Positions 7,803 through 25,727 of a stretch of 64,000 bases of DNA are shown here, piece after piece. The stretch comes from Paraphysomonas bandaiensis (Eukaryota > Protista > Chrysophyceae), in NCBI GenBank assembly GCA_965644295.1, contig CBFFRP010000287.1:1-64000 (forward strand). Direction: 5' to 3'. The notes below the pieces were generated by a model. The model ran no database searches. It had not been told where the DNA came from and worked only from the letters and a program-made list of their open reading frames with translations. The translations under genes and the position numbers were made by a program. Numbering within the stretch: the first letter of the stretch is position 1; each line of letters starts with the position of its first letter.

Positions 7803-10377
7803 CTCGATGGGCACAGCCAAGTGAAAAGGAACCCACTGTACAGCTGTCTTGGCCTTTTCTCCAGAGTCGTCAGGCACTACTTCCACCGATATCTGTTCAA
7901 CGTCGCCTGTAACAAAACAAAGCCGCTTTTCAGTATACTACAAACATCATAGGGGACTCATTGCAATACCATTGGCATCAGTTTGAATATCCGTGCAGCG
8001 AACTCTGTGATATTACAAAATAACACATATCGTTATTAGTGAGATATAACCACCTGCAAGCGTATTTGAGGCTGACAACTTTACCAGGGGCAAAGCCAAA
8101 GAAATCCTGAATCCAGATGGTGCAGTTACATACATATGCATCTTAAGTAACGTATTAATTCAGATAATACAACATTACTGTCGTATGCAAACAATACAGA
8201 GAATTCGGCAAGGTACACTTCTATACGTACTGGAGAATCGACAGTGCGAACATCAGATTTGTCGATGTATACTTTAGATGTCATTCGCAGTGGGTGATCG
8301 CCTCTAGCCAGGTCGAATGGGAAATCCAACCCAACCCAATCTATTTCGCAAGTCGCATCGTCTGCAGTAGAAGCATTGGGAAGGTTGGAGAGGCCAGTGA
8401 TGGTCACGAGCACAGGATCCAGAACAACCATGACCTTCAAGTATTAAATAGGCATAAACAAGATCAAAGCCAACCATTCTATTAACACACGAGGAATAAC
8501 ACTTACTCTAGGTGAAGATTCGTGCAGGGTACTCCTCGCCCTGTAAATGACATAGTACTTAATTTTGTGATAACACGATAGGGGTGAAGCGCGACTTGCA
8601 ATGGCACAGCTGATAACTTACACCGAAGATAGCTTTTCATATTCGACCGTATTTTCATTGCGAGTAACTCCAATATCTGTGCAAAACTTATTCATAATCT
8701 CAGCAGTGAACCCACGTCTTCGAAGGCCCTATATACACCAATATTGGTCAAAATACGCCATAATAATTAAATATAATATCAAAACTACTTATCAATACAC
8801 CGCCAAGATATCTGCAAGAAACACTGGGGTGGTAATTGTAACGATACGAATGCTTCTGTTACCTTGATAGTGGGCATTCTGGGATCATCCCAGCCCCTCA
8901 TTACCCCATTATTCACAAGCTTAAGCAGCTTTCTCTTCGACAGCACTGTATACGCAACATTTAATCGAGACATCTCGTAAACCTGCACCACCAAATTTGT
9001 ACAAGTGTAAGTAACATATGTGAATAGTACAAATAAAACAAAGCTACAAAGAATAGAATTGTATGGTGCATCAAAACAGACGTCTACATGGTGGGTACCT
9101 TTGGTCTATACATATCAAGTGCCTCAAGAAGCCAAAAGTACGATTCTCGGCGACTTTCAAACTCCAGAGTACAGATTGAGTAATCGACATGCTCAATACT
9201 GAGTCCACACAATATTCAGCACATATATAAAAATAGGATAGCCATATCCCAATAAACAAAACAATTCGAGAATCATGTATATACGCCACAGACAGGATAT
9301 CATTGTTATTAATATATAGCGTACAGTACGTCTTACCTATCAATAAGACAGTGTGTATAATCATAAGTCGGGTATATGCACCACTTATCTCCCACATGCG
9401 GATGGGGCACATATTTAATACGATAAGCCACCTATACGCGTAACGCACACACGTGTTATACACAGAATGCACACAAATATTTTGCATCGTTGTGTTCATC
9501 AAACCTTCCCATCACAAAATAACGGCAGATCTCAGACATGCAGCACTAACTTATAAATAAAATTGCACATTGACACCAATTCATTTCTCTCAGGTGTATG
9601 ATATACCTGATCCCACATATTCGGGTTAGGAGATGACATGTCCATCTTCATGCGAAGAGTAGCCTTGCTTGATTCATACAGGCCCATACGCATCTTCTCG
9701 AACTCCAACAAGCTTTCTCTTATAGGCCTAAATTATGTCAATTAGCTCACAACCGTAAATTTTAGAAGTAATATTATTAATGTGATTGTCATGAACGCTA
9801 AAGGAAAGATGTTTTGTAGAAAATAATACAACAAAAGAATTGCGTTACTGAACCTGTTTCTCCAGGGACTGCAAGGGTCACCAGGCGAATCGGGGTTGGC
9901 TACCTTGGCTTTGGCAATTTCGCGAGAGGCCTCCATTTCAGCTTTGGTTTGATGACAAACGTAGGCCTTGTCGCGCTTGATTAATTCCACCGCAAGCTCG
10001 TGAAGTTTATCAAAATAATCAGAAGAAAAGGTGATAGGATTAGGTTTCCAACCGAGCCATTCAACATCCTCTCGCAGAGAATCAATATATTCCATGGACT
10101 CCGCCTCGGGGTTCGTATCATCATATCGAAATATAGTCTGCCGATTCTCGGGAGGAACTCCAAGCTTTTCGAACGCCAATGAAAAATTCATGTTCATACT
10201 TTTGCAGTGACCAATGTGAAGATAACCATTCGGTTCAGGCGGAAATCGAGTGCGGACTTTGCCTTGGTTGTGGCGAGCATGCTCCTCCAAAAGCTCCGGT
10301 GTATTCACCATGGACGGTAATTCTCGTGCCGCCAATTCGCGAGAAGAACTGGGGGTTGTGGAGCCTGTTTCACTCAT
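7803..10377 (-). CDS. QARS: Glutaminyl-tRNA synthetase, multi-exon; final exon(s) lie left of the satellite, outside the window
   Basis: [16 protein letters not shown] (HIGH motif) and RYDDTNPE in exon 1 (10377-9854). Manually spliced GT-AG exons give MWDQ|[44 protein letters not shown] (KMSKS-like), [10 protein letters not shown]|GLRRRG, and anticodon-domain [18 protein letters not shown] ending at a GT donor at 7802. No stop codon is reached in the window. Confidence 0.95.
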
Positions 10378-12596: not shown

Positions 12597-12871
12597 GGTA
12601 AACTCGTCCCGGATGCTTCACTTCAGCAGTCAGGCTAATACCCAACTGTATCTTTAAGGCAAGCCTTTGCCGGATGCGTATTTATATTAGTGTCTCTTGT
12701 ATCACTCAAGCATTTGACTTTGAGTGAACAGAACGTTATCTGCTCTCTATTTATGCGACTCACGTTAGTTTCCCGAAGAAATCTCTCCGGTACTTATCCC
12801 TCAGAACACCACGAAAAAGGTGGGAGTGCGACTTTGTTTAGGGTTATGGCACATACACTGGCAACGTAGTA
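12597..12871 (+). repeat. Dispersed ~430-bp repeat family, 3' half
   Basis: CCCGGATGCTT...CAGAACGTTATCTGC...GAAATCTCTCCGGTACTTATCCCTCAGAACACCACGAAAA matches 34040-34320. Confidence 0.88.
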
Positions 12872-19900: not shown

Positions 19901-20274
19901 ATAATTAGAATTGTTAGAAATCTATTTGATGTTTGTGAATATAGTTAGTATCATTAAATTAATTTGCGTCTAGGAAACCCATCCGTGACTGGTAGGGAGT
20001 ACTGTTATTCGGCCAACTTATGCTCCAAGTACTCTTCTGGCGGGATGCCTTACGTACCATGGGCTCCTGGTACTGAAGGTATTACCCAGCGTATCGCGTG
20101 ATGCATTATCGTTATCATATATTGAGTAAACGCGACATAATAGGATTCATATAACGTGTTTGCGACGCTTTGTTGTCAAAATTATCATCGTATCACTTTT
20201 ATTACTCACCGTTCATTGTAGATATGTTTCCTCCAATGATTCGCAACTCTAAGTACCCCCCACGATTTAGTTAG
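16998..20274 (+). CDS. GT60-family polypeptide alpha-GlcNAc transferase (Skp1-HyPro GlcNAc-T / Golgi OGNT-like), type II membrane, multi-exon
   Basis: N-terminal TM (IWCLIVLWVLVIIFCLVYMF) and Ser/Thr/Pro-rich stem. Then IFILTASYRDPE, GPTVARALAE, GIDSHCHFLRGWD (DSH motif), FFAAGFSF, PYD...IFDGEE...RAWTWGYDLYHP. The last exon reads DMFPPMIRNSKYPPRFS* with TAG at 20272-20274. Confidence 0.88.
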
Positions 20275-20648
20275 ATGTAAGTCATGTATAGGCGAACATT
20301 TTCATTTGTGGGATATATTTCTGGAACAGCAGTTCATTTGTTGTTATAGAGAATAGAATATGTGAATACCTTACACTGCTATGGAAGTGCTAGTAGTCTT
20401 GGATAATGGCCAGAGTCTTATAAGATCTAACTTTTTGCGGTGTGTCAGTTGTTAGAGACGATAGTACTCATTAATTCGATATTTTCTTACTATAGACGTA
20501 TCGTTATTATTGCTCTACTCACACGGAAGGAAGTATGCCTCCCCAACGAAATCACACAGTTGTAAACAGTTTTTGCTAATTTGTTTATTTAAGAGCCGTA
20601 TAATAATGTTAATACGTCAATAGTACTGTTGAGTACTGCGATATTGAG

Positions 20649-23600
20649 TGTTGAGTTCTGCAATATGATGTGATATATATTGTGCAATTGAAGTGAGTTA
20701 ACAGTGTGCAATAGGTAAAGTCAACTCATAGGTGTAACGGGTGATTATAGTTACAAAGGAATTAAATTCCTTTGTAACACAATGGACATTTCACTGAAGT
20801 TAACTTTGCTCTACACGTAAACCGTAACCTTGCTGTTGAACACAATGCACTTTCAAGTAAGAAATTATAATTATTATTCTGAACACTTCACTACATATTC
20901 GTGTAACATATGTTGAAACATCTGTTCCCAGCAACACCTGTTTATCATATGTTCATCAGTCAGTTCTATATCTTGTATAGTCACACATCAGTAACTGAAT
21001 TTAATTCCTTTGTAACTATAATCACCCGTTACACCTATGAGTTGACTTTACCTATTGCACACTGTTAACTCACTTCAATTGCACAATATATATCACATCA
21101 TATTGCAGAACTCAACACTCCCACTCAATTGGATGTAGTTAACCATTCTAAAATATGTGAAGAACATTGCTATCGGATACGCAACCACCGAACCTCATAG
21201 GACACTGGTGGACGTATGACTCCGCTGGTATAGCTAGCTCCCACCATTCAGTAACACCTAACTAGGTACGACGAGCTCTCTTTACCTTGGGTACCTCTGC
21301 GATAATTTGTTCAGTAGTCTTAAATTTTTCCCCAAGATTTCGCTCCCTCTGTTCAATGAATATTGGACCTCTCAAAGCCTTGGTATATATATCAGCCATC
21401 TGTTGTCGACTGCTCACATGAATTAATTTCGCTGTATTAAACTGTTCGGGATCCACATGCTCTCTAATCATATGATACTTAATCTCAATATGTTTCGATC
21501 GTTGATGTTGCACTGGATTTTCCGATATATCCTGAGCACTTTGACTATCCAGGAATAATGGTGTGGGCTCGTCAATTTTCAATCCTACTTCACCAGTCAC
21601 CCCCCGAGACCATATCATTTCCTGTAATCCATTATATAAGCATTGATACTCTGCTTGCATAGTCGATGTAGCTACAGTAGACTGAAGTTTGGAACCCCAC
21701 GATAGTGGTCCACCAGCTCCAAACATAACATAACCTGAAGTTGATCTCCTCGTCAACGGATCGCCTGCCCAGTCAGCATCAGTGAACATATGAAGATCAA
21801 AATCTCTCCCTCTATAATGAATGCCTTTATCTGTAGTACCTCGTACATACTGCATTAAATACATCAGGAGCTTACATACAGTGATATTAACTTTCGTTGA
21901 GAATCGTGACAATACTCCCACTGCATATGAGATATCCGGCCTTGTATTCATAGATAAATAGAGTAACGCTCCTAGGAGTGGACGATAGGGAAAATTATCA
22001 ACTAACTTCTGCTCCTCAGCTGAATGCACATGTTCCACTCCCACTTTGACATCACTAGGTAGTGGGTATAGCCGCGTCTTGTCCCTTGCACCCAGAAAAT
22101 CCACATACTTCACCAATATCTTTTTGATGAACACTGTCTGGTCAAATTTGAGACAATTCGGAGTTCTCGTCACTCTCACGTTCAAAAAAAACTGGCCACT
22201 CTCATTCATATCTGTAATATCAAACCTTTCACATACTCGTCGCTTAATTTCCAAAATAATATTCGTATCTCGACATGCTCTCAGCATATTATCATCATGA
22301 CTGTGGTGAGCTTCGAAGACCATATAAACTTTTCTTCAGTTTAAAGCAATATCCTGGTGGCAATTTGAAATCTGCTGGTGTTGCATACTTATACACACAT
22401 CTCCTTTTATATCTGCATATACAAGAATGCATTAGATACGTCGAGTTGATGCACCACCATATTCATAACAAACGCGATAGCTAATAGCAATCTTACTGTT
22501 ACCGCTTTTACCACTGGAGTATAATTGTTGGCTCTACCAACCTCATGGCCTCCGCATCCAAGTACCACAAGTCTTGCTTTCTATCGTGGAATCGCACCCT
22601 CCTTGTTGCGTTTCAAAGCAAAGACATACTCAGGATTCCAATTGCAGTGACACTGGGGTAGGGATGATGGGCTTAACTTCCATTACTTCCCTTCGTTCCA
22701 GTCTGTCACGCTCAGCCTGTCTTGCTGTCAATGGAGTGACACTGGGGTAGGTATGGGCTTAACTTCCATTACTTCCCTTCGTTCCAGTTCGTCACATTCA
22801 GCCTGGCTGAACTCCATTGCTTCCGTTCCGGCAACTCCAAGGATTCGGAATATGTCTGAGGCACCTTAGGTCCCGCTGACGAGCACCAGATGGAATCTGC
22901 CTCCTCTAGTAGGCTGCACTCCACTTCGTCACACGAAGGTAATACGTGCTTCTCCCCTACTACTGACACATTCGTCACCACCCTTGGAGCCCTTGTGCGC
23001 CTGCCCCTAGTTGAGCGATCTGATGGAGCTTCCTCTCCCGGAGCACTTACGAAGTCAGAAGGGGATGGAACCGTCCCAGTCAACTGCTGTAATAAATGTC
23101 CGCTGGTCCCGTCGTCACGAGATCCAGAACTAGCAGATACTCTTGTCACAAGGTCTTCACTCATCCGCGATGATGTGAATAGGAGTCTTAACTTCCAGTT
23201 GCTCCTCACCACCTGACATCAGGGATCTATATCCCACAGTTAGACCTCTTTCCGAATCTATATTCGCGTGGTCTTGTTGTACAGTTGGCCGCCATCTTCA
23301 CATGGGTTTTGTCGATAACACTCCTCCCTGAGGAACCACTGCCACCGTGGCTTAGTCCATTTCTCGGTAGTAATCAGCCGATCTCTAGGGCACTGATACA
23401 TCAAACAGGGCATGAACAGACGTGACTATTGTATCTCCTACTATCAACACTTGATACCCCATCTGCTCGTTGGGAAACCCACAAAATATCCTGTTTGTGC
23501 CTTTTCCTCCCAGTCTTTCCGTCTATCGGCCTTCGGGACTAATACATACGCCTTGCACCCCCATTTCCTCTCAACCAGGATAACTCGGGCACCTTTCCTC

Positions 23601-24950
23601 CCAGGAACACACTCATAAGGCAACATCCACTAACTTTACTGTCCTCCTTGGCATTTTCCTCCATTACATGATGGCATGATGACGTAATAATAGGCTAATT
23701 CAAAACGTCATAATATTATATAGTGCCTCCCATGGCATTCCTCCATGCTCATCATAGTCTCCAGCCAGCACCTCTCTACCAGTGTTTAACTCTACAATTC
23801 TCGGTACTCTAAGTAGTTCCAATCCACACACCAGTGCCCGCAGCATTCCGCCTGAGACAATATTCTTCACCGCATCTTCACATACTTTGATGCCTTCTCT
23901 TTTGCCAGTGTTGAAAGCTTCCTACTCCTTGAGTCTCCATTGCTGACCCCTTCTTCGTCAGAGATATGACTCCTGGCTCTGCTTCATAATATTTCTCTAG
24001 CACTCTATGAACTTTAACAACAATGAATAGCTGCTTTCCGGCACAACTGCCTAGATACACTCGTTGGTCTACTGTTTAAGTCATAAGCACTTCACCATCA
24101 GATTCTATCTTATTGGACTCCCCTCCAGATGAGACATCATCATCTACATATTAGCACCATTCCGCCGATGAACTCTGTCTCTGTCTCTGTTCATGTGTAT
24201 GTTCAGCACTCCTGCTCGTTATCTATGAACAGCTGCACTGCTCTGCTGCTCTGCTCAGTGTAGAAGGCAGTTTTAGTAGAAAATACATTTCAGCCTATCA
24301 ATCTCTATTTCGTCTATATCATTGGCCAATATTTACAAGCTGGTATTTCGCTGTAGTCTTCTCGAGTACTACTCCCAACTCACTCCTAGACCTATCCACC
24401 AGCGTTTGAAGCATATGATTGGACAAAACCTCCTTATTGGGATCATCGTCTGGTAGTCGCCTCCATGTATCGGTTGGCACCCTCCAACACATCTGCGTCA
24501 TGTTCACATGCCTCCCAAATCGTTACAACACACGTGTCGCTTCACTTGTCAAACTTCAGCACCTTGCTGTCCTCCATCGCCTCATCAGAACTACCATCCG
24601 CTACCATGTTAACAATGGACATTTCACTGAAGTTAACTTTGCTCTACACGTAAACCGTAACCTTGCTGTTGAACACAATGCACTTTCAAGTAAGAAATTA
24701 TAATTATTATTCTGAACACTTCACTACATATTCGTGTAACATATGTTGAAACATCTGTTCCCAGCAACACCTGTTTATCATATGTTCATCAGTCAGTTCT
24801 ATATCTTGTATAGTCACACATCAGTAACTGAATTTAATTCCTTTGTAACTATAATCACCCGTTACACCTATGAGTTGACTTTACCTATTGCACACTGTTA
24901 ACTCACTTCAATTGCACAATATATATCACATCATATTGCAGAACTCAACA
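20649..24950 (-). mobile_element. Ty1/Copia LTR retrotransposon, internally decayed, identical LTRs, with an extra inverted LTR segment at its 3' terminus; TSD TTGAG
   Basis: 5' LTR 24950-24607 (TGTTGAG...AACA), PBS TGGTAGCGGA (24606-24597), PPT TTGAGTGGGAG (21128-21118), 3' LTR 21117-20779, inverted LTR piece 20649-20769. TTGAG at 20644-20648 and 24951-24955. RT/RNase H ORF 22323-21262 (TRPDISYAV, FTDADWAG, RSKHIEIKYH, ADIYTK) and an integrase C-terminal remnant at 23444-23626. Confidence 0.95.
21262..22640 (-). pseudogene. Copia reverse transcriptase/RNase H, disrupted
   Basis: R*KARLVVLG has an in-frame stop. HQLDVSNAFLY is followed by two +2 frameshifts, and there is a deletion between SPQSW and the DD motif. 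RNase H is intact. Confidence 0.9.
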
Positions 24951-24959
24951 TTGAGCTAT

Positions 24960-25106
24960 TGACACTTGTAGTAGTGTCCCTTGTACCACTCCAGTATATG
25001 GCTATGAGTGGGCAGAACGTTATCTGCTCTCTATTTCCCAAAGATATCTCTCCAGTACTTATCCCTCAGAACACCACGAAAAAGGTGGGAGTTCGACTTT
25101 GTTGAG
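24960..25106 (+). repeat. Dispersed ~430-bp repeat family, partial 3' segment abutting the Copia TSD
   Basis: GAGTGGGCAGAACGTTATCTGC...TACTTATCCCTCAGAACACCACGAAAAAGGTGGGAGT matches 12720-12835 and 34170-34285. Confidence 0.85.
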
Positions 25107-25727
25107 GAAATGAATTTGTCGAGGGTAGCTAATACTATTATTTTATTATTGACCCTATGAATCAAGATATACGGAGTATTATGACAATGGTATGATAGGC
25201 TTACTATTGGTATAGTATAACTGATATAAATTAGTATAACTGAAACAGAGACAAAGAGATTACAGATTTATAATGAAGACTAGCACTGGAGATTAATGAT
25301 GATTATATTTACATGACATTATAATGCACAATGCGCAAGGCTGGAGAATTCCGGGTTTTATATTCATTCTATCAGATGTGTATTCTAACTAGTATTGCCG
25401 AATTATCCAGTAAAACAGTTGTAATTTACGTATTCTGCATTGTCCTGAAGGGGTTGTGTATACATACTCTGTCAAAGTCTTTATGCATGTACTTCGCATA
25501 AACTACAATGAAATACTGACAGTATCTTCCCATATGCATTTATGATGAGTTATCATCATCAACTGTGATGTATGTATTGGTATAGAATGTAAATGAAGGT
25601 CATTCCGTTGGCCATGGAATCGTAGGTAGTATATAACTAATTGATACAACTACGGACGTCTGAGCATTGATGACTTTATTTTCCCCTTCCATGTGTTGAT
25701 GTTATATATAAAAATGTGTTTCTCTCT

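Follow-up and report, generated by a model that had tools for sequence, protein, structure and literature searches.

How can a copia retrotransposon carry the same end of its long terminal repeat (LTR) at both borders and at the same time lie within a single target site duplication (TSD)? This question is raised by an element on the minus strand of a 64,000-nt stretch of DNA from the chrysophyte Paraphysomonas bandaiensis (contig CBFFRP010000287.1, positions 1 to 64,000, assembly GCA_965644295.1), referred to here as the window. A preliminary description had reported a shortened 3′ LTR, a 14-1-14 palindrome, an inverted LTR piece of about 120 bp and an outer TTGAG duplication, and all of these were found again, base for base, between the two TTGAG copies (20644-24955). 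In our reading, the locus very probably arose by same-end concerted integration of an aberrant reverse-transcription product, with the U3 (unique 3′) terminus of the LTR at both ends, which produced the TSD TTGAG. The features of the two borders are as follows.

20644-20648, unstranded: left TSD copy TTGAG, identical to 24951-24955
20649-20769, plus strand: inverted copy of LTR bases 1-121, identical to both LTRs at 121/121 positions; predicted U3
20770-20778, plus strand: nine added nt, CTTTGTAAC, complement of LTR 102-110, between the inverted piece and the shortened 3′ LTR
20750-20778, unstranded: perfect 14-1-14 palindrome of 29 bp, marking the strand-switch or hairpin point
20779-21117, minus strand: 3′ LTR, 339 bp, with the final 5 bp (TAACA in element orientation) absent
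20997-21007 in the 3′ LTR and 24830-24840 in the 5′ LTR: native micro-palindrome GAATTAAATTC (LTR 111-121)
24607-24950, minus strand: 5′ LTR, 344 bp, complete, with TG...CA ends, running TGTTGAG...TTAACA
24951-24955, unstranded: right TSD copy TTGAG, directly outside the 5′ LTR

On the plus strand, 20649-20769 reads the LTR in sense, beginning at the terminal TGTTGAG, and the inverted piece stops precisely at LTR base 1, where it touches the TSD. Its inverted match to the 3′ LTR measures 124 nt, the extra 3 nt (GAG) being a chance sharing between the TSD and the polypurine tract. A perfect inverted repeat of 121 nt is not attributable to chance. The 5′ and 3′ LTRs match at 339/339 bases (100% identity also for the direct repeat 20779-21078/24612-24911), and this, together with the 121/121 match of the inverted piece, indicates one recent event. 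The 29-bp palindrome is composed of the LTR's own GAATTAAATTC and the nine added nt, which differ from the forward LTR continuation, AGTTACTGA. A second, 5-1-5 palindrome (TCAGTTACTGA, LTR 120-130) overlaps GAATTAAATTC. Where the added nt meet the 3′ LTR, LTR base 339 is joined bluntly to LTR base 102, with 5 bp lost and no microhomology.

To what extent the window locus stands alone was examined in the genome (62.5 Mb, 669 contigs). A pattern search gave no second occurrence of the 29-bp palindrome, and none was found of the 20778/20779 joint. The survey of LTR termini relied on perfect 21-22-mers only, paired by eye, so that diverged or truncated same-end events escape it; it sought pairs of like ends that lie on the same contig, point outward and are flanked by reverse-complementary 5-mers. 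About 100 outward-facing U3 termini were listed genome-wide, with only ~6 outward-facing pairs on the same contig, and two of these ~6, the window and a pair on contig C279, had reverse-complementary flanking 5-mers. Beyond the window, the survey returned exactly two further same-end insertions, one on C279 (U3/U3) and one on contig C119 (U5/U5, the opposite LTR end), each with a perfect 5-bp TSD. The same-end total is thus three among roughly 60-100 surveyed insertions of the family.

The insertion at C279:6066-8087 (locus L081; 6061-8092 with the TSDs) is a ~187-bp U3/U3 fold-back with the U3 terminus at both ends and the TSD AACTG on both sides. It holds U3-side sequence only and no element. 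As in the window, an inverted identical terminus and a family-typical TSD were found at each border. The joint connects LTR 1-63 to the complement of LTR 123/125-1 with a 2-nt microhomology, and the breakpoint (LTR 123-125) lies 2-9 nt from that of the window, in the overlapping second palindrome. The fold-back was later split by a ~1.8-kb DNA transposon with its own 9-bp TSD, CACTTCAAT.

The insertion at C119:92347-111154 (92342-111159 with the TSDs; loci L054, L079, L080, L078 and L053) is a U5/U5 inverted partial dimer, in which two outward-facing 3′ LTRs lie between two copies of the TSD GATGC; the locus lacks a 5′ LTR. Read inward from its U5 end, the left arm spans 3.3 kb, as far as the integrase-coding part, and is interrupted by a nested element of 13.9 kb. 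The right arm starts at the first base of the primer-binding site (PBS), runs for 100 nt, skips ~2.25 kb and continues to the U5 end. In their outer ~1.5 kb the two arms match one another in inverted orientation (987 bp at 100% identity; 521 bp at 99.6%, with one gap). One of the inner joints coincides exactly with the U5/PBS border. Minus-strand DNA, once completed, has its natural 3′ end here, and the joint thus bears the mark of reverse transcription. An origin from two unrelated insertions was rejected in view of the absent 5′ LTR, the inverted-identical arms, the joint at the PBS border and the matching outer 5-mers. As other transposons hit both C279 and C119 later, the two loci are real structures and not recent assembly errors.

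The transposon in C279 (L081:516-2338; C279:6215-8037) has terminal inverted repeats of ~75 bp and is present in high copy number, with more than 1000 candidates at first look. A segment of ~370 bp within it matches many overlapping, staggered positions on other contigs (among them C435:173501-174966 and C107:36445-38106), which suggests tandem arrays. The nested element of C119 (C119:92867-106778; L054, L079 and L080) carries 769-bp direct terminal repeats that are 99.9% identical and have no TG...CA ends. Its apparent TSD is only 2-3 bp, and it contains another pair of direct repeats of ~1 kb (98968-99973 and 103779-104779).

Perfect 5-bp TSDs of varied sequence were present in 15/15 normal copies of the family in which both borders could be read, and the probability of a chance match between two 5-mers is about 1/1000. 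Because the U3 terminus stands at both borders within one 5-bp TSD, a single integrase reaction appears to have used two like ends. We infer that the integrase worked in its usual way, by concerted strand transfer with a 5-bp stagger, on a pair of U3 ends at the window locus and at C279 and on a pair of U5 ends at C119. The earlier proposal that integrase had accepted two U3 ends is therefore upheld by the U3 terminus at both borders, the single TSD, the 15/15 family TSDs, the genome-wide uniqueness of both junctions and the recurrence of such insertions at C279 and C119. Taken together, the three loci suggest that the integrase of this family repeatedly inserts fold-back by-products of reverse transcription.

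Other family members were surveyed for the same junction, as the preliminary description had suggested, and none in the 62.5-Mb genome had it. The locus had also been proposed there as a route from LTR elements to inverted-repeat elements, which found no support: no propagated copy of either junction was found, and the terminus survey gave single instances only. A mobile unit with terminal inverted repeats would be present in several copies at different sites, and the junctions are unique genome-wide.

Several observations weigh against same-end integration as described above. The letters of the duplicated TTGAG are also those of LTR bases 3-7, and they recur next to the polypurine tract (AATTGAGTGGGAG). 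An inverted junction of polypurine tract and LTR with a 6-bp deletion could mimic the left border and would leave no TSD, but this is less economical. The switch points are close and not identical: that of the window lies no further than LTR 121, that of C279 no earlier than LTR 123. The blunt LTR339/LTR102 joint resembles end-joining more than a polymerase jump. Finally, no empty site was found in the genome. The left flank (20100-20648) is single-copy, and the right flank, from ~24960, is a 5′-truncated copy of a dispersed repeat of ~150 bp whose other copies continue differently leftward, which leaves none of them as a paralogous empty site. Metagenome contigs were scanned for exact matches to the predicted empty site, and to the left flank alone, and gave none. 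Two contig pairs, C190/C202 and C336/C495, show the same insertion with its flank twice and appear to be duplicated, haplotig-like contigs; none of these spans the insertion site of the window.

The dispersed repeat itself (24960-25107) gave more than 1500 genome candidates at first look, and another copy lies in the window at 12682-12842. Other copies reach ~40 bp further to the left, ending ...GACTTTGTTGAGGG.

How would a cDNA (complementary DNA) with two U3 ends come about? Within same-end integration, the substrate would have been a full-length cDNA of the non-autonomous copia element, with its U5 end minus 5 bp, joined to a snap-back piece of ~130 nt, probably an abortive plus-strand DNA. 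Plus-strand synthesis would pause at the overlapping palindromes (LTR 111-130), and the 3′ end would fold onto the complementary or a displaced strand and copy a short stretch of it, 9 nt for the window locus and 61-63 nt for C279. The snap-back piece would then be attached to the U5 end of the full-length cDNA, either through another jump of the polymerase or because the host end-joined two molecules, and the joint would be made before or during integration. The overlapping palindromes may thus act as a hot spot for pausing and switching. The observed breaks fall at LTR 116-121 (window) and LTR 123-125 (C279), within the palindromes 111-121 and 120-130.

The same region points to the nature of the inverted piece. 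A TATA-like GATTATAG (LTR 94-101) lies upstream of the breakpoint region, which contains an initiator-like TCAGTT with its A at LTR 122. Since the breakpoint follows the one and includes the other, the inverted piece is predicted to be exactly U3, with a transcription start at ~LTR 122.

The preliminary description had placed the inversion in the cDNA, formed through the micro-palindrome of the LTR. The switch point is indeed inside this micro-palindrome, whereas snap-back within a single molecule stands beside end-joining as a possible origin of the inversion. Within same-end integration, we put joints made by strand switching of the reverse transcriptase in one molecule at a little short of even, and host end-joining of two cDNA pieces is a possibility that we hold only tentatively. 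Sequence alone does not separate the two.

Of the explanations that differ from a single switched molecule, the one that survives best is integration of two separate donors, with the cell's non-homologous end-joining uniting their inner ends either ahead of strand transfer or afterwards; we regard it as unlikely overall, but as one to be taken seriously. The nine palindromic nt would then be P-nucleotides from a hairpin opened off-centre, and the perfect 14-1-14 palindrome does resemble an opened hairpin. The bluntness of the LTR339/LTR102 joint, its 5-bp loss and its lack of microhomology would be expected on these grounds as well, and one inner end of C119, at the U5/PBS border, coincides with the point where a reverse-transcription intermediate naturally ends. 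By reasoning alone, a pure snap-back strand has one duplex end, and further steps are needed to obtain a duplex with two. Separate donor molecules are also the norm in concerted integration in vitro (PMC8487063). On the other hand, two donors require two integrase-competent U3 ends per complex, in addition to rescue of a broken chromosome or prior ligation. The identical 1.5-kb arms of C119, with 100% identity in their longer block, would fit self-copying better than end-joining and are more simply explained by it.

An inverted copy could also have been added after a normal insertion at TTGAG, if replication template switching or break repair placed an inverted copy of 20997-21117 at the outer edge of the LTR. 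Such an event would have been small: TGTT after the TSD is common to both LTR ends, only ~125 bp would be inserted with one base lost, and the source sequence is just 227 bp away. It calls for two coincidences, as the copy has to end at the border of LTR and internal region (within 4 bp) and to be pasted exactly at the border of LTR and flank. Moreover, it leaves unexplained both C279, where a U3 fold-back lies inside a TSD without any element, and the C119 joint exactly at the U5/PBS border. We therefore consider a rearrangement after integration very unlikely.

An assembly artefact, in which a fold-back chimeric long read or a mis-join made the inverted segment, is extremely unlikely. The structure is known from one assembly, which has some duplicated, haplotig-like contigs (the pairs C190/C202 and C336/C495 mentioned above), and perfect inverted repeats are typical of fold-back chimeras. 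Yet an artefact would not end at LTR base 1 beside a matching 5-bp TSD, in the middle of a contig and with unique flank beyond, and the analogous loci C279 and C119, later hit by other transposons, are old real structures. The least probable explanation of all is that a new element hit or adjoined an older LTR or LTR fragment of opposite orientation, with deletions and a chance TTGAG: the family does land in and beside older LTRs (contigs C358 and C432), but there is no old-LTR remainder on the far side of the window element, unlike at C358, the U5 end of the new element is incomplete, the nine joint nt are not the forward LTR continuation, the inverted piece shows no mismatch and a chance match of the 5-mers has a p of ~0.001.

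The C358 copy had itself been considered as a second same-end case. It occupies C358:168766-173056 (locus L061) within an older inverted LTR that is 87% identical, with the TSD TCCTT beside the same palindrome. With the remainder of the old LTR on the far side, full ends and its own TSD TCCTT, it proved to be ordinary nesting and was rejected. Its LTRs end in TTAATA instead of TTAACA. Judging from this site, new copies may also integrate preferentially at the palindrome region (compare PMC6911290). On C432, a family copy lies 20 bp from an older inverted LTR.

With same-end integration as the preferred reading, we compared the three loci with known systems. Artificial Ty1 transposons bounded by U3 on either side were reportedly used by Devine and Boeke in 1994. 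Concerted integration by Ty1 integrase is obtained in vitro with two identical U5 donors, and the enzyme needs little beyond the terminal bases (PMC8487063). The likeness to the present family lies in a Ty1/copia integrase, two like ends and a normal stagger. That assay used designed donors in a test tube, whereas here natural insertions are seen, three times. Abnormal template switching has been invoked for complex copia insertions flanked by a TSD (Sabot and Schulman 2007, PMC1950507). These are likewise of copia type, composites of one round of reverse transcription inserted singly with one 5-bp TSD and near-identical outer LTRs; they are tandems of three directly repeated LTRs that keep one normal U3 end and one normal U5 end, in contrast to the inverted addition and same-end termini found here. 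The three-LTR complexes are the closest described case, and a limited search of the open-access literature gave no description of a natural same-end insertion of an LTR retrotransposon.

Rearranged products of reverse transcription are also able to integrate in human immunodeficiency virus 1 (HIV-1), where defective proviruses with inversions or asymmetric LTRs have been ascribed to reverse-transcription errors (PMC9278108). These are given as genome inversions or 3′-LTR deletions, with no same-end termini described. Autointegration yields inversion and deletion circles of Ty1 and of the Arabidopsis copia element SISYPHUS, as summarized in PMC7197481 (citing Garfinkel 2006). In that summary, and presumably here, inverted copia cDNA segments are formed before chromosomal integration. 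The products it presents are circles in which an intact LTR terminus is joined to an internal site, while ours are linear and chromosomal, with inner joints that lack an LTR terminus. Autointegration was accordingly rejected, since none of the joints (LTR339/LTR102 with the palindrome centre, LTR63/LTR123, and integrase region/PBS) contains LTR base 1 or 344. Ginger DNA transposons move by cut-and-paste with a gypsy-like integrase and have terminal inverted repeats (PMC2836005). They share with the loci described here an integrase-type enzyme acting on inverted, TG-started termini and a short TSD, but have their own transposase and are multi-copy, whereas the present loci are single-copy dead ends of a retrotransposon. 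Ginger shows only that integrase-type enzymes can serve inverted-repeat elements.

Concerted integration with two like ends has so far been a test-tube result. The three loci provide natural, in-genome evidence that a copia integrase completes it with two U3 or two U5 ends, and indicate that folded-back products of reverse transcription enter the chromosome often enough for their frequency to be measured (three in roughly 60-100 surveyed insertions). The breakpoint region, LTR 111-130 with its two overlapping palindromes, is open to biochemical test.

What could such loci do once inserted? The predicted read-through RNA of 20640-21125 folds into a perfect stem of ~124 bp (-264 kcal/mol, z = -25.9), which raises the possibility of a hairpin RNA from the window locus. 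As the inverted U3 points inward, antisense transcripts of the element could start from it. A related case is Mu killer, a DNA rearrangement of a DNA transposon that was shown to make small interfering RNA (siRNA) (Slotkin 2005, as cited in PMC11624286). In both, an inverted duplication of part of a transposon could yield hairpin or antisense RNA against its own family. For Mu killer, as presented there, siRNA was shown and the origin is a DNA transposon, whereas the window locus belongs to a retrotransposon and is a candidate source. Same-end insertion would offer a one-step origin for LTR hairpin loci, which have been suggested to set off retrotransposon silencing in the first place but have seldom been seen in that role (PMC11624286). 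A wider reading, which we consider improbable, is that the family regularly makes fold-back cDNAs at a palindromic hot spot near the predicted U3/R border and that these, owing to an integrase tolerant of like ends, are inserted as ready-made LTR hairpins which silence their own family. If this were true, same-end loci would be silencing triggers from the outset and would give the family a built-in restraint on bursts of transposition, and the ~187-bp fold-back of C279 would be the simplest possible integrase-bounded inverted-repeat unit.

The remaining features of the window element and the exons nearest to it are listed below.

21118-24606, minus strand: internal region, 3489 bp, non-autonomous copia derivative with broken reading frames
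24594-24606, minus strand: putative PBS of transfer RNA (tRNA) type, TGGTAGCGGATGG, immediately 3′ of the 5′ LTR
21118-21132, minus strand: polypurine-tract region, CCAATTGAGTGGGAG in element orientation, abutting the 3′ LTR on its upstream side
22407-22568 and 21262-22323, minus strand: fragments of the Pfam domain RVT_2, which is interrupted
23444-23626, minus strand: integrase SH3-like domain (PF25597), 5′ of RVT_2
~0.9 kb left of the insertion: GlcNAc-transferase-like exon
~2.6 kb right of the insertion: phytochelatin-synthase-like exon

The presence of RVT_2, integrase 5′ of reverse transcriptase (the copia gene order), direct LTRs with TG...CA ends, a PBS, a polypurine tract and a 5-bp TSD places the element in Ty1/copia. 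The RVT_2 fragment at 22407-22568 scored 34.2 bits against a cut-off of 31.6, and the one within 21262-22323 was weaker. The element is not autonomous: its longest open reading frame is 353 amino acids, many stops occur in all frames, and the protease and the integrase core are missing. It is a young, defective, non-autonomous deletion derivative of copia, and it lies between host genes. The tract that precedes its 3′ LTR reads GAGTGGGAG, and an identical 15-mer is found upstream of the 3′ LTR in all family copies. Self-priming, with the PBS paired to the element's own LTR, was rejected for this family: for the 36 nt that follow the LTR, no complement of at least 7 nt was found anywhere in the LTR.

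At least 251 LTR starts of the family were counted in the genome when up to 2 mismatches were allowed. The LTR spacing is ~3.82-3.85 kb in most paired copies, as in the window copy, and ~4.6-5.1 kb in a few. As most paired copies have its spacing, the deletion derivative is the commonly amplified non-autonomous form. Copies with identical LTRs differ by 0.7-3.7% in their internal halves, in a mosaic pattern; for loci L002-L010 compared with the window element (20644-24955), the LTRs are 100% identical and the internal regions 1.7-3.7% apart. The window copy is itself a mosaic, with a 5′ half nearest to the C358 and C242 copies and a 3′ half nearest to those on C95 and C352. Such a mosaic pattern is typical of recombination during reverse transcription, and here it would fit frequent template switching between co-packaged RNAs.

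A few family copies showed irregularities of other kinds. At C352:290491-290519 (loci L007 and L035) 7 additional nt, GCTAACA, separate the 3′ LTR from the TSD TAATT. The same GCTAACA ends a variant LTR in C324, so that this untidy U5 end perhaps derives from a mixed template pair. At C386:89250-90125, two U5 ends are followed by the same 8 bases and two LTR starts are each preceded by the polypurine-tract motif; the repeats are 508 bp apart on one strand, which looks like a tandem duplication of the 3′ LTR with its flank. At locus L036 (C336:~8870-8995), a 5′-truncated LTR (bases 221-344) is followed by the PBS, and the upstream TTCGAATCCCCCCTG resembles a tRNA T-arm and may belong to a tRNA-derived short interspersed nuclear element inserted in the LTR.

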